Below, piece by piece: positions 26,621 to 35,739 of a stretch of 64,000 nt of DNA. The stretch lies in the sequence record OP617745.1; one strand, written 5' to 3'. Made by a program: the position numbers and the translations under genes. Numbering within the stretch: the first letter of the stretch is position 1; each line of letters begins with the position of its first letter. Below the pieces are notes generated by a model. The model was not told the origin of the DNA and did not search any database. It was given only the letters and a program-made list of their open reading frames with translations.

Positions 26621-26838
26621 ATATGTTATTCCTTTAAAATTATGTTGAATGTATTTTTAAAGTGCTGTATAAGTACTGAAATATGATTTTCATCATATCT
26701 AATTCTCAATAGTCATTCTTTATACACGTAATTATGTTTTCTAATGATTCATTATTACTTTGGTATTGTAAATTGATTCATTTAACCATATAAAATACTA
26801 TCCAGTACTATATTCTATGAAGATATTTATAAAATAAT

Positions 26839-27761: not shown

Positions 27762-27797
27762 ATTTTTACCTCTTTTACTTAAATTTACTTGACTTTG

Positions 27798-27804
27798 TAT
27801 TTAT
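27798..27804 (-). promoter_or_regulatory. Putative late promoter ATAAATA
   Basis: About 37 nt upstream of the lysozyme start. Confidence 0.6.
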
Positions 27805-27871
27805 ATTAGAGTACATTTGTGTAGTAAAAATATTTGAATACTAAAAGTTGTTAATTATTTAAGGTGTTTAA

Positions 27872-28294
27872 ATGAGATATGATGTTATAAATGATGTTAG
27901 ATCTGTTTCTGTGGTTAATAAAAAGTACTTCTATAAACCAAAAGGTAAAAACAATAAGAAGTATGAAACCATGATTGATGAATACGGAACAGAAGTGATT
28001 TGTAGTGATGTACCACTTGATTTACCAGAATTATCATATGAATACAATTCTTCAATTGAATACAATGGTGTTGAATTTATTTATAGAACGTATATTCGTG
28101 ATAATTATGAAATAGAAGATGATGTAATATACAGACGTATGACAGATTACACTGAAATGGATGAAGATGAGCTATTCCAGTACTCATTGGTATTCGAGAA
28201 TGATAATTTTTCATTTCATGATGCAGTTAAAATACAAAAATGGTTAATTATGAGATATCGTGTTGTTAATACCACGATTAATGTGGATTTATAA
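27872..28294 (+). CDS. Hypothetical protein
   Basis: 140-aa ORF with AAGG RBS. Confidence 0.6.
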   Translation: MRYDVINDVRSVSVVNKKYFYKPKGKNNKKYETMIDEYGTEVICSDVPLDLPELSYEYNSSIEYNGVEFIYRTYIRDNYEIEDDVIYRRMTDYTEMDEDELFQYSLVFENDNFSFHDAVKIQKWLIMRYRVVNTTINVDL

Positions 28295-28305
28295 GAGAGA
28301 TTATA

Positions 28306-28764
28306 ATGCCTGGAAAACCAGAGAAAATTTATGACAATACAGAATTAACCATTATACTGAAAAATGTAAACAATTACAAGAATCTAAGTCCAGAAGCAAG
28401 GGAGATATTCAAAGAAACGAATATCAAGTACAAACCGAGCGGTGCTGAAAGACCCTATGATATGGATCATATTTACTATATGATTAGAGTTCTAACTGAG
28501 GTGTCACTTGATTCAGTACGAAAGAGTTTAATTCTAAGGACAGGTGTAGTATTATCTAACAAGTCAATACAAAGATATAAGCGTGTTGTAATAGAAGTAT
28601 CAAAAGCATTGTTATGTACACACAGAAATGGTATTGCTTTGCATATCAAAAAAGAAGAAGGAAAACACTATTTGACAGATCAACAAAGTTCCAGATTGAA
28701 CACTTTAAGGAAAAAGGGTGTCCCTATTGAGGACATGATAAATTACCTACAGAAACTGCTCTAG
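28306..28764 (+). CDS. Hypothetical basic protein (possible DNA-binding)
   Basis: 152-aa Lys/Arg-rich ORF; its stop abuts the repeat locus. Confidence 0.55.
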   Translation: MPGKPEKIYDNTELTIILKNVNNYKNLSPEAREIFKETNIKYKPSGAERPYDMDHIYYMIRVLTEVSLDSVRKSLILRTGVVLSNKSIQRYKRVVIEVSKALLCTHRNGIALHIKKEEGKHYLTDQQSSRLNTLRKKGVPIEDMINYLQKLL

Positions 28765-28920
28765 CCCAGTATTCATGCGGGTTGTAGGAATTAGGGACAC
28801 CTTTTTGTGTGTTTTTTTGGTGCAGTGTCCCTAATTCAGACCAAGAACCCAGTATTCATGCGGGTTGTAGGAATTAAGGACACTCTATTATTAAATTCAT
28901 ACTTTTCCTGTCCTTAATTC
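28765..28920. repeat. Two 36-bp direct repeats (28765-28800, 28848-28883), each completed by a downstream inverted arm
   Basis: CCCAGTATTCATGCGGGTTGTAGGAATTA(G/A)GGACAC twice, 35/36 identical; arms GTGTCCCTAATTC (28825-28837) and TGTCCTTAATTC (28909-28920). Confidence 0.9.
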
Positions 28921-29180
28921 AATAGGTCGCTACGCTCAAATATTGATCTTCGTCACTCCGTTCCTCGATCAATATTAAAATCGGCAATTTGCGTTTTGTT
29001 CTCGATTCGCAAGCGAACCAATCACAAACCAGCAGCGAATTGCGAATCTCCCTTCGGTCAGTCAGTAATACTGCTTTTGGGAGAAAGCAACTCTCGGAGT
29101 GATGAAAAAAACGAATTCCATTCGCCTCATGAAAAACCAACGAATAGTCGGTTCTGTTGAATTACTTGAATTATAATTGT

Positions 29181-29487
29181 CTGTATTCACTTCTAAGGAG
29201 TTTTATACACTTCCTTAGTGGTTCTATGTATTAAACAAGAAAACACATCAGAATGCGATACAGGAATTCTCGTAGCTATTATCAAAGCAGTTACTATCCA
29301 TTGTAATATCTGCTCCATTAAAAGGACGCCCAATTCAGTACTGAAAAACTTTTGTGAGTAAGTCATTTCAAACTGATTAATTTAAGGACACCCATTCAAA
29401 TTAGCTGTATCCACTTCTAAGAAGTTTTATACAATTCCTTAGTGGTTTTATGTCTTAAACAAGAAAACGCATCAGAATGCGATACAG
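29181..29487. repeat. Two 83-bp direct repeats (29181-29263, 29405-29487)
   Basis: 77/83 identical; each bounded by CTGTAT...ATACAG and holding internal hairpins. Confidence 0.9.
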
Positions 29488-29513
29488 AGCGTTTTATGTG
29501 GTGTTACAGAAAT

Positions 29514-29548
29514 AACAAAAGGAGCACAAGGCTCCCTTTGTTTTTTTT
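29514..29548. terminator. Intrinsic terminator
   Basis: GGAGC-acaag-GCTCC with A and T flanks, next to the gp5-like stop. Confidence 0.7.
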
Positions 29549-29549
29549 A

Positions 29550-32210
29550 TTACTGACATGCCTCAAGACGGCGTGCCATAAACTCGGCACGTCTTGTTGT
29601 TTGACCATACCATGCAGAGTTGCGAATGTGTGCCGCCGCCAGGCGATAGTTTCCCTGTGCCATAGCACCAAGCATACCCGTAAATTGTTGTACGCCACCT
29701 TTACCCATCTGGAATACCATCTCGACTAGTACAAGTTGAGCCATATATGGGGTTTTCATCTTATAAGATGCATAGATAGAACTGGCATCGTTGATTGCCT
29801 TTGTACTATCACGAACCAACATTGCATCAGCTTGTTCTTCAGTAATACCTGAACTGAAGTTTTCACCACGTAATACTAGGTGTCCATAACCAATAGTTGG
29901 AAACCCTCTACTATCAGTATAAGTCCAGAATTTATCATTTCTAAAGTACCCTTTTGCTTGTTGATATTGTTTAGTACCTTCAAACTCTTTGAGTTCTGGC
30001 ATTAATGTAGAATCACCCGGTTTTATTTGCCAATCCACCGCAGTTTTATCTACTGTACCAATATTCATTTCTTGTGGGGAGTAATTAACCACTGTACTGC
30101 TTTTTGATGTTCTTGGTCGTCTAACCGGAACATGACGAGACCCACGTTGTGCATAACCAGAACCAATTGTTTGTATCTTGGTACTAACAACCAGTTCATT
30201 ACTATCATTACCAGACACCACTACTGTGTTAGATGATGTTTCTTTAGTAGCTTTACCTTGTATTAGTGTTTTATTTGCACATTCTGAACCCGTACCAGTT
30301 TGGGTAGCATAGAATAGACCAGGATCTACCGTACCACTAAAACCATATAAATTGGCTGAATCGACGCGAATTTCAAATTTCAAAATACCACTTGCAGTAC
30401 CAATTTCCTGTCCTTTTTGTACTACATCTTTACTATACAATGAAGTTTTCAAACCATAAAATACTGATTTATACCCAGAATTATGTACAATATACACTGC
30501 ATTATTATATATACCAACTGTACCGGCATCAGGTGCAACTACAGTAGAATTACATTGTATTTCCCAGCCATTATGATCTGTTGTACTTCCTTTATTATCA
30601 GTTATATTTTTACCCCAATACCCGTACTGACGAATAATACCATTACATGGCATTAACATGTGAAGACCTTCATATGTTTGGGAATAACCATTCATACCAG
30701 TATCAGTCATTAAATCTTGTGTCTGCACTTGAGATGTTTCTGGGGCGTATGAGATGAACTGTACGGCCTCCTGTTGTTGAGCCTGTACCAACTGTGGCTG
30801 GACGTCATTCGCAGGTTGTGGATGTACTGGTGCCGTAGTTGAACCACTTCCTGAACCATTGTAACCTGTATCTACGGTACTACCATGATTTGATGCATCC
30901 TGCCAGTTTGAAATATTATGAATATGTTCATTAAGTCCAGCATTTGGTGTTTTAAAGTCCGGTGCCATAAATTCAGCAGTACCCTTATTACCTGAAGCAT
31001 CAACTGTAAGATTCTGCCCACCACCACTGATATTAGTGGATGAATCACCGATGATGTTAGCAGTTGAACCTTTCATGGAAACATTACTACCAGCAGTCAC
31101 ATCAGTACTACTACCGCTTTGTAAACGTAAAGAAGCAGCCGTCACCAATCGTAAATCTGCACCACTATTGATAACTACTTGTCCTTCTATTTTAGAATCC
31201 AATGAACCAAGTAATTCAAGTTTAGTATTACCACTAATACGAGCATTAAGATCCTGTCCAGTTTCTATATTACATGATCTACCAGCAACCATATTAATAT
31301 CCTGACCAGCACGAATGTTAATATTTTTATCGCAGTGAATATTAATATCTCCATCACCGGTAAATGATATACGAGCAGTACCATCACGATTGATTAATAA
31401 AATATCACCAGTTGCCTCAGATAACATCAACTGAGCACCACTACGAGTACGCAAAACAATACCTTCATTGGTTCTTGCTCCCACCCTGGTATCATTTACT
31501 GGGTTGTTGAATTGTGTATCCTGATAAGTATCTGGATCATCATCCCATGAAGGAACATTAAGTTCATCATCGGTATATCCATCATCTAGTACAAAACTAT
31601 TACCCCTTGGTGTACTCATACCATATACTGTACTAATCATTTGTCTGGTACTACTTCTGTTAGCTACACCAGCTTCTTTGTCGTATAAAAGGTTTTGTTT
31701 TTTTAAACCTTCAACGATAGGAACATTGACATATTTTTCATTTTGATCAGTACTGATGGTATTTCTGTCATAATCGGTAACTGGTAATGGAGAATCTGTA
31801 CCACTATATTGTGATGTAGTGGAAGTTGCCATACCTGGAACCATTGTGTTCATTCGTTGTTCGTATATACAACCAATCCAGTAAGCTTCATGTGATCTAC
31901 CCTGAATGAATATAACAATTACTGGACAGCCTACATCGGGAGGTACCGCCCAGAATCCATAACCTTTTGGATACTGACCGTATGCATCAGCACTCGGTAC
32001 ACCTGGGGTTTTACCTGCAAATGGAGACATATAAGAACATTCAATCCATGATTTCTTATCGTCTCGTTCACTTTGTGAACCCTGAACCCATACTTTAATT
32101 TTACCACTCATAGTAGGATCTCGGTTGTCCATAACAATCGCTACCTGTGGATAAGCTGGGTCAAAACGACCCAACTGTTCTTTTGCATACTGTTTACTTG
32201 TATCTACCAT
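29550..32210 (-). CDS. Baseplate hub/tail spike (gp5-like): OB-fold, beta-helix, degenerate M23 domain, C-terminal lysozyme
   Basis: DNRDPTMSGKIKVWV..YGFWAVPPDVG, LRTRSGAQLML, GxxN/S repeats, HNGWEI..VAPDAGTV..VQKGQEIG, EFEG..YTDSRGFPTIGYGH. Confidence 0.85.
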   Translation of the reverse strand: MVDTSKQYAKEQLGRFDPAYPQVAIVMDNRDPTMSGKIKVWVQGSQSERDDKKSWIECSYMSPFAGKTPGVPSADAYGQYPKGYGFWAVPPDVGCPVIVIFIQGRSHEAYWIGCIYEQRMNTMVPGMATSTTSQYSGTDSPLPVTDYDRNTISTDQNEKYVNVPIVEGLKKQNLLYDKEAGVANRSSTRQMISTVYGMSTPRGNSFVLDDGYTDDELNVPSWDDDPDTYQDTQFNNPVNDTRVGARTNEGIVLRTRSGAQLMLSEATGDILLINRDGTARISFTGDGDINIHCDKNINIRAGQDINMVAGRSCNIETGQDLNARISGNTKLELLGSLDSKIEGQVVINSGADLRLVTAASLRLQSGSSTDVTAGSNVSMKGSTANIIGDSSTNISGGGQNLTVDASGNKGTAEFMAPDFKTPNAGLNEHIHNISNWQDASNHGSTVDTGYNGSGSGSTTAPVHPQPANDVQPQLVQAQQQEAVQFISYAPETSQVQTQDLMTDTGMNGYSQTYEGLHMLMPCNGIIRQYGYWGKNITDNKGSTTDHNGWEIQCNSTVVAPDAGTVGIYNNAVYIVHNSGYKSVFYGLKTSLYSKDVVQKGQEIGTASGILKFEIRVDSANLYGFSGTVDPGLFYATQTGTGSECANKTLIQGKATKETSSNTVVVSGNDSNELVVSTKIQTIGSGYAQRGSRHVPVRRPRTSKSSTVVNYSPQEMNIGTVDKTAVDWQIKPGDSTLMPELKEFEGTKQYQQAKGYFRNDKFWTYTDSRGFPTIGYGHLVLRGENFSSGITEEQADAMLVRDSTKAINDASSIYASYKMKTPYMAQLVLVEMVFQMGKGGVQQFTGMLGAMAQGNYRLAAAHIRNSAWYGQTTRRAEFMARRLEACQ

Positions 32211-34891: not shown

Positions 34892-35622
34892 TAAATAAAT
34901 CCTCCTTTGCGTAATAAGTCTCCACGCTTAAATGAATTAAGATTAAAATTTTTGGTAACATAATCCGATGTAGGTTGTTCTTCTAATTGGATAGTTACAG
35001 GGACTTTGTGTGGAACCCATACTTCGTTTTGTTGATTCATATAACCATTACTTCTTAATTGATCAAAAAAAGTTCTGGTATCCGCATCACTTAAATTAAA
35101 TGTAGTAGTGCTACTATCTACTGGAACCTGAATATAATCAACATCGTTGGTTAAAGAAAAATTATAACTTTTTAAAATAACAGGAATATCATTATATACA
35201 TATCTTCCATAAGCACTTAGTAGTAAAATCGGTGGAGGTGCACCAGCCACCGCATAATCATTATTACTGCTCATAGCAGCCTGTCTACCAAAATCCATCA
35301 AAGATACACTTCTTATGAAATGCATACATGCTAAAGTATACAGTGCTTCTGTTGGTGTATTACTAACGAACTCACCTTGAATATTAAAAATAGTATTACT
35401 CGTATTTTTATAATTATTATAATTTGAATTTGAATGTACAGGTGATTGTGTTTCATAAACTACTGAACGTTGTTCTGTAATAGTTGGGGTAACATTCCAT
35501 ACTAAACCATTAGAACTTCTAAGAAAGGATAGTAACGTTGGTGTGGAAGCATCTCCATAATCACCGTATACATAATTCGCACCCGCATCCTTTGGTCTTA
35601 ATCTTACACGGCGGTCAATCAT
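34891..35622 (-). CDS. Putative baseplate-tail tube junction protein
   Basis: TPTIT...Y...PVHSN..Y..Y.NTS, GAPPPILLLSAYG.YVYNDIPV; first gene of the baseplate operon. Confidence 0.55.
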   Translation of the reverse strand: MIDRRVRLRPKDAGANYVYGDYGDASTPTLLSFLRSSNGLVWNVTPTITEQRSVVYETQSPVHSNSNYNNYKNTSNTIFNIQGEFVSNTPTEALYTLACMHFIRSVSLMDFGRQAAMSSNNDYAVAGAPPPILLLSAYGRYVYNDIPVILKSYNFSLTNDVDYIQVPVDSSTTTFNLSDADTRTFFDQLRSNGYMNQQNEVWVPHKVPVTIQLEEQPTSDYVTKNFNLNSFKRGDLLRKGGFI

Positions 35623-35650: not shown

Positions 35651-35657
35651 TATTTAT
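35651..35657 (-). promoter_or_regulatory. Putative late promoter ATAAATA
   Basis: About 29 nt upstream of the start at 35622. Confidence 0.6.
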
Positions 35658-35739
35658 ATTTGAATAAAAACTATTTTTTGTACTATAATATATACAATGA
35701 TCCATATTATGGACAACGTGCAATCAAAAGGATTTGTAA

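Follow-up and report, generated by a model that had tools for sequence, protein, structure and literature searches.

In the jumbo phages of the genus Alcyoneusvirus we found two paralogous structured non-coding elements of about 130 nt, restricted to this genus within the sets searched, one of which (copy A) occupies positions 28921-29049 of the DNA analysed here. The window, meaning the whole stretch of 64,000 nucleotides from sequence record OP617745.1, belongs to the Klebsiella jumbo phage KP13-7, an Alcyoneusvirus of the RaK2/K64-1 group, and matched RaK2, K64-1, Muenster and other Alcyoneusvirus genomes at 97-99% identity (ten records including OP617745.1 itself, at 100%). Sequence comparison shows a genuine, conserved element whose base pairing both copies have kept since an ancient divergence; probably it represents an undescribed family of small structured RNAs. 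The more specific reading that we prefer, a small structured RNA from the minus strand, is put forward tentatively and takes just under half of our confidence.

Copy A is situated in a gap of 785 nt (28765-29549) that separates two convergent genes; within this gap an earlier note on this DNA had flagged positions 28921-29160. The gap is part of an insertion that separates a baseplate hub gene from a small lysozyme gene in the Klebsiella phages and is lacking in the sister genera; in 121Q, PBECO4, Hallingskeid and Munch, which represent related groups, the two genes are spaced by about 36 nt. Both ORFs of the insertion were found at 99-100% identity across all ten Alcyoneusvirus records and nowhere else. 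They are orphans without an informative family, PDB or atlas match: the first matched PHROGs of unknown function, and the second gave one sub-threshold PADLOC match (PDC-M24B, E 0.016). GC content was about 0.43 in the core versus about 0.33 for the window. The features of the region are as follows.

27762-29549: insertion of about 1.8 kb separating hub gene and small lysozyme gene, comprising two orphan plus-strand ORFs (27872-28294 and 28306-28764) and the 785-nt gap
28306-28764, plus strand: orphan ORF to the left of the gap (ORF calls)
28765-28920: repeat-hairpin block of two 83-nt units, each a 36-nt direct repeat with a 12-13-bp hairpin whose arms are GAATTARGGACAC (repeat scan)
28921-29049, minus strand: conserved core of copy A, about 129 nt, defined by homology to copy B (a model from copy B alone scores it at 54.9 bits, E 9e-13)
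28927-28938, minus strand: invariant 12-nt box, reading UGAGCGUAGCGA (TCGCTACGCTCA on the plus strand), the same in every A and B copy
28939-28976, minus strand: hairpin P4, a perfect 10-bp stem (28939-48 with 28967-76) with an 18-nt loop (inverted-repeat scan and A/B comparison)
28977-29049, minus strand: rod-like domain of four helices, P0, P1', P2 and P2a (A/B compensatory changes and the fold of copy B)
29044-49 with 28977-82, minus strand: helix P0
29038-43 (GCAAUU) with 28984-89 (AAUUGC), minus strand: helix P1'
29025-28 with 28995-98, minus strand: helix P2
29014-21 with 29002-09, minus strand: helix P2a, the apical hairpin, with loop CUUG
29050-29160, minus strand: remainder of the flagged stretch, poorly conserved and missing from copy B; it contains 29095-29106, one partner of a pseudoknot proposed in the earlier note
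29550-32210, minus strand: gp5-like baseplate hub/lysozyme gene to the right of the gap (annotation)
230886-231013 of RaK2, minus strand in RaK2: copy B, near 138.1 kb in the KP13-7 record (sequence search)

We also observed exact matches to the T4-type late-promoter word (TATAAATA), all on the minus strand, at 27798-27805, 35651-35658 and 26824-26831. One of them precedes the small lysozyme start by 37 nt, and another precedes by 29 nt the gene starting at 35622. These words suggest a T4-like late transcription in which the lysozyme gene might have its own late promoter, the insertion having cut it off from the hub gene.

Copy B was found by searching RaK2 with the sequence of the gap. It is about 70% identical to copy A, lies at about 230.9 kb in the early/terminal-repeat region and was present in this region of every Alcyoneusvirus genome examined; in Muenster its position is 6.3 kb into the terminal repeat, annotated there with a length of 20 kb, and it has a terminator on one side and the next plus-strand gene on the other. 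A covariance model from B copies only retrieved every A copy with 52-55 bits (E about 1e-12), and gave two copies per genome and no other match in the 346-kb RaK2 genome. Outside 28921-29049 the flanks aligned to copy B no better than shuffles, and the proteins flanking the two copies are not paralogous. The 12-nt box occurs a single time in the window, and in RaK2 it was found only at both element copies.

Variation among strains agreed with these limits. In an alignment of 8 strains, variable columns amounted to 3.1% in the core, 3.2% in the block 28765-28920 and 1.7% in the coding ORF2, and to 15% in 29050-29169. Of the extent first proposed, 28921-29160, the part 28921-29049 was thus conserved, whereas the 3' half belongs to the most variable segment. 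Changes among B copies were confined to one loop base, one base at a junction or helix end, small 5'-end shifts that preserve pairing, and one loop inversion. The gap around copy B has contents of its own: at least two early promoters of sigma-70 type (TTGAAC-17-TATAAT at L004:1436-1464 and TTGACA-17-CATAAT at L004:1914-1942) and a palindromic hairpin AGGGATTCAGTACTGAATCCCT (L004:1967-1988), which lies inside a 31-nt segment present in RaK2 and KP13-7 and deleted in the other five strains examined.

Comparison of the two copies showed that base pairs were kept by compensatory substitutions, all of them across a single deep split, copy A versus copy B. The P4 arms of copy A, AATATTGATC (28939-48) and GATCAATATT (28967-76), both contain GATC. 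This hairpin, pointed out from the letters alone in the earlier note, proved real: it is a perfect 10-bp inverted repeat that is kept in copy B as a stem of 13 bp with an 11-nt loop and with one compensatory change, A-U to U-A. Two such changes fell in P2a (U-A to C-G and C-G to G-C), one in P2 (C-G to G-C) and two in P1', which reads GCAAUU/AAUUGC in copy A versus GCCUUU/GAAGGC in copy B. Over the matched changes of P1', a 3-bp hairpin, P3, is the alternative to this 6-bp helix.

Two folds incorporate these helices differently. In the rod fold, a rod of about 70 nt is followed by P4 and the 12-nt box stays unpaired; in the four-way junction fold, UCGCUG (29033-29038) pairs with six bases of the box and so closes the junction. 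With a model-guided alignment the junction fold had 97.5% of cells paired and 5 pairs changed on both sides, compared with 30-48% and 0 pairs in slid controls. For the rod fold 92.7% of cells were paired, with 7 pairs changed on both sides and at most 1 in controls; the pairing percentage was lowered because the automatic alignment had misplaced one base in two A rows. Folding energies of copy A gave no decision between rod and junction (-34.2 vs -33.6 kcal/mol in the window and -36.6 vs -36.4 in RaK2), and those of copy B favoured the rod (-52.2 kcal/mol vs -42.9 for the junction). Either fold, the rod and hairpin with a free box or the four-way junction, would fit the sequence data.

Compared with shuffled sequences, copy B folded far better on the minus strand (-52.2 kcal/mol, z -7.4) and also better on the plus strand (-34.2 kcal/mol, z -4.0 to -4.8). 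Copy A alone was no better than its shuffles, with z of -1.2 for the minus and -1.1 for the plus strand. The full 240 nt flagged at the outset, for which folding beyond that of shuffled controls had been named as a check, did only marginally better (plus strand z -1.7, minus strand z -2.5).

We favour the minus strand because at all wobble positions, of which there are about eight, the pair is G.U on this strand and an A.C mismatch on the plus strand, with none reversed. Likewise, one-sided changes were seen four times (C-G to U.G, U-A to U.G and similar), and each retains pairing solely on the minus strand. Such a bias would be expected in about 1% of cases under strand symmetry. The earlier idea of a structured non-coding RNA is therefore retained as a conserved structured non-coding element, but with a different fold and with wobble pairs that favour the strand opposite to the one first read.

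Signals for transcription point in the other direction. Scans for sigma-70 and T4-type late promoters found no recognisable minus-strand promoter before copy A or copy B, and copy A is preceded on the minus strand by several terminator-like hairpins. The sole good promoter reads in the plus-strand direction: TTGAAC-17-TATAAT, located directly after a terminator and 36 nt upstream of the copy B box, has a predicted start that coincides with the start of the A/B homology. Taken together, the missing minus-strand promoter and the plus-strand promoter at copy B keep alive both a plus-strand leader and a sense/antisense pair. No intrinsic terminator was found for the element: neither strand has a T-run after P4 or the rod, and the terminator scan reports none inside 28921-29049.

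A plus-strand RNA element, which we judge quite unlikely, would make copy B the 5' leader of an early transcript and copy A a structure of the two plus-strand ORFs, either promoter-proximal or in the 3' trailer, with an effect on transcript stability, processing or termination. Besides the promoter of copy B and the z values of its plus strand, this reading could draw on a TATTAT at matching spacing (35 nt) at copy A and on the hairpin of unit 2 in the neighbouring repeat block (D2), which has G.U on the plus strand in most strains. The same reading would, however, turn every wobble of the element into an A.C mismatch and cost copy B 18 kcal/mol. The -35 at copy A is poor and separated by a 15-nt spacer, the site is absent from the promoter-scan output, and after copy A there is no plus-strand gene, the next genes all being in opposite orientation.

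Metatranscriptome contigs from three runs of two studies covered 28860-29081, 28863-29068 and 28917-29067 and left most of the neighbouring 2.5 kb uncovered. These contigs have a depth of 2-4, end next to strain-variable sites where assembly graphs break and might reflect DNA carry-over, and thus lend weak support to transcription of the core. Our literature searches found no Alcyoneusvirus transcriptome.

Perfect arms and palindromic sequence can also arise and act at the level of DNA. Hairpin-loop inversions and quasi-palindrome template-switch mutations occur in non-coding DNA, and an event of this kind was evident in phiKp_21, whose copy B (L035:356-483 vs L004:1495-1622) carries an 11-nt P4 loop that is the exact reverse complement of that in other strains, between perfect arms of 13 bp. 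This inversion is a typical DNA hairpin event, and it implies that the loop sequence is dispensable or that this copy is damaged. The element could accordingly be a long quasi-palindrome plus palindrome that serves, as double-stranded or extruded single-stranded DNA, as a protein-binding, recombination or priming site, or it could be functionless and kept palindromic by template-switch correction. We regard this explanation as unlikely, although several observations favour it: local template switching in quasi-palindromes can also yield matched changes, GATC is present in both P4 arms, the minus strand lacks a recognisable promoter, the folding energy of copy A is unremarkable, and the gap is rich in other repeats and inverted repeats.

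Against a DNA-level role, template switching is expected to produce perfect Watson-Crick arms and leaves unexplained the G.T on the same strand at all of the about eight wobble positions. The invariant 12-nt box is not palindromic, and two 70%-identical copies in unrelated contexts fit a spreading repeat poorly. Loop inversions as known from other non-coding DNA resemble the exact exchange in that one strain, but they do not account for the strand-biased wobbles, the invariant box and the retention of two diverged copies. The cumulative GC skew also gives no origin signal at 29 kb; it turns near 35 kb, where gene orientation flips, which likewise lends no support to the suggestion of a replication-origin core. 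The repeated 13-mers of the gap, which would be the candidates for initiator-binding repeats of an origin, lie outside the core and are missing at copy B. What weight remains beyond the readings discussed here we assign to a functionless repeat relic.

The other repeats of the gap have features of their own. The block 28765-28920 abuts the core directly, and copy B has no such block. Its GAATTARGGACAC arm sites were seen 4 times vs 0.18 expected, and between its two units the arms differ by a matched G/A and C/T change. To the right of the core, a 94-nt module is duplicated at 29170-29263 and 29394-29487, with a spacing of 224 nt and 89% identity. On the minus strand, CTGTATC...GATACAG borders each module, which encloses a terminator-like hairpin, CGCATTCTGATGCG with a T-run after it; Muenster has a single copy of the module, which might reflect recombination between the repeats. 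For the palindrome CAGTACTG we counted 31 occurrences in the whole window vs 0.6 expected (e.g. 29336-29343), both within genes and between genes.

All strings quoted in the earlier note are found where it placed them. On their basis it had read 28921-29160 as a pseudoknotted, ribozyme-like non-coding RNA of about 240 nt or the core of a replication origin, a model that we now consider highly improbable. The complementarities exist, and the minus-strand minimum-energy fold of the 240 nt includes the pairing of the P4 loop with 29095-106. This loop segment, TTCGTCACTCCG (28949-60), is indeed 92% complementary to its partner, but the pairing is at chance level, since about ten other inverted pairs of 11-12 nt with 91-92% complementarity were present in a 2-kb scan; it is missing from copy B, and the partner lies in the most variable segment. 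The stem of GATTCGCAA (29004-12) with TTGCGAATC (29040-48) is present in copy A, but copy B has a local hairpin with compensatory changes in its place. TCTCCC (29047-52) can pair with GGGAGA (29079-84) as stated, but the pair C29052-G29079 is broken by two independent, uncompensated strain changes and the stem is missing from copy B. Nothing was found in favour of a ribozyme, as there was no Rfam ribozyme or intron match up to E 10 in the 785-nt gap.

In the poorly conserved remainder we recognised by eye two terminator-like hairpins on the minus strand, 29153-29131 and 29124-29112, the latter followed by a U-run at 29111-29105; both were under the thresholds of the terminator scan. This homopolymer, an A-run when read on the plus strand, is 7 bases long in the window and 6 in phiKp_21; most strains have 5, and a metagenome relative has 3.

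The same run bears on a small protein gene annotated in RaK2, ORF076w, which encodes 69 aa on the minus strand and has a counterpart of 73 aa in the window (28919-29140). The frame is not conserved between strains because the varying length of the A-run (3, 5, 6 or 7) shifts it in the start region. KP13-7, Muenster, K64-1 and phiKp_21 leave the ORF unannotated, it has no Pfam or PHROGs match, and the homologous core in copy B shows non-triplet indels and no ORF of 50 aa or more. Although the ORF is annotated in one genome and present in the window, we give a protein-coding gene a bare outside chance; RaK2 ORF076w is very probably not a gene, in agreement with the first impression that the stretch holds no credible ORF.

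Nor did the element match any Rfam family, in line with the earlier note, which had recognised no known RNA family in it. A search of the whole window against Rfam 15 returned 0 matches at gathering thresholds. The best sub-threshold matches had E values of at least 0.58 in the gap and at least 0.09 around copy B, and they were located on terminators outside the core. ARAGORN predicted no tRNA or tmRNA in the window or at either copy locus. We rejected two further candidates. Resemblance of the 12-nt box to a tRNA-Met anticodon arm was seen only in a chance match picked by a pattern search. A type III toxin-antitoxin RNA (ToxI-like) was dismissed on account of its expected architecture: the core is without tandem repetition, and the neighbouring ORFs are upstream, not downstream, of the repeats. 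These ORFs gave no Pfam, PHROG, PADLOC or NCBIfam match relevant to a ToxN-type role.

Homologues were likewise rare. The covariance-model search of the whole records of 121Q, PBECO4, CMSTMSU, Hallingskeid and Munch found none, and the syntenic gap of 121Q downstream of the copy-B neighbour gene held none either. A pattern scan of IMG/VR with two conserved blocks yielded 14 loci, 12 of them chance matches and 2 RaK2 itself; a metagenome scan yielded only one A-type and one B-type locus, both near-identical. A scan of GTDB genomes and a blastn search of E. coli gave no match. As far as these searches reach, the element family appears to be confined to Alcyoneusvirus. Searching RaK2 for targets of the 12-nt box gave no enrichment, with 3 near-matches of two mismatches besides both copies vs 9 for a control pattern.

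Our best guess at a function is that of a regulatory or antisense small RNA from the minus strand. Such an RNA would consist of a rod-like hairpin of about 70 nt, a second hairpin of 10-13 bp and, on the 3' side, the invariant box, which would be either free or paired with the internal UCGCUG of the four-way junction. The stable hairpins may protect the RNA, and the box might nucleate pairing with a complementary plus-strand transcript. The sigma-70-type promoter, predicted to be strong at copy B but weak at copy A, would set the start of this transcript about 35 nt before the box. Stable stem-loops with a short exposed segment that is complementary to the 5' part of the opposite transcript are typical of cis-encoded antisense RNAs, for example IS10 RNA-OUT, the plasmid copy-control RNAs CopA and RNA I, and lambda OOP. 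The location of copy B just downstream of a plus-strand promoter resembles their arrangement; unlike them, the element has no recognisable promoter or terminator on the antisense strand, and copy A has no downstream plus-strand gene.

Taken as an RNA, the element is a new and narrow family within a known kind, the small non-coding RNAs of phages. Its two closest analogues, from T4 and PA5oct, are not homologous to it. T4 rnaC/rnaD (species 1 and 2) are similarly phage-encoded and structured, have 119-139 nt and are two per genome. They differ by their place in a tRNA gene cluster and by the T-arm-like hairpin at the end of rnaC, whereas the Klebsiella element is not near tRNA genes, and cmsearch without filters scored the T4 rnaC/rnaD locus at 4.6 bits at most. 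For PA5oct, a related Pseudomonas jumbo phage, two abundant non-coding RNAs, ncRNA001 and ncRNA002, have been defined by RNA-seq from the terminal-repeat region (PMC7318152). Like copy B they are free of ORFs, come from the terminal-repeat (early) region and have no likeness to known RNA families. However, they measure 236-451 nt and their transcription is proven, while that of the Klebsiella element is putative, and there is no homology of sequence or structure between them. In the whole PA5oct record the covariance model returned one candidate (15 bits, E 0.43), which lies beside, not in, ncRNA001 and matches the hairpin only.

A more far-reaching idea, which we consider improbable as it stands, is that the two copies form an undescribed riboregulator family of jumbo phages. 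The shared box would then be a seed for phage or host RNA, or for the complementary transcripts of each other, and would time the shut-off of early genes; the copies would be expressed from the terminal-repeat early region and from the cassette between the baseplate genes, and the PA5oct non-coding RNAs would be their sequence-unrelated counterpart.

Jumbo phages are under development against Klebsiella, and very few of their non-coding RNAs are known. The finding corrects the annotation of ORF076w in RaK2. If the element were only a DNA quasi-palindrome, it would be of minor interest. Two copies are present in every Alcyoneusvirus genome examined and none in the sister genera, and the testable helices together with the 12-nt box provide a concrete handle on whether the early programme of Alcyoneusvirus phages is under the control of small RNAs.
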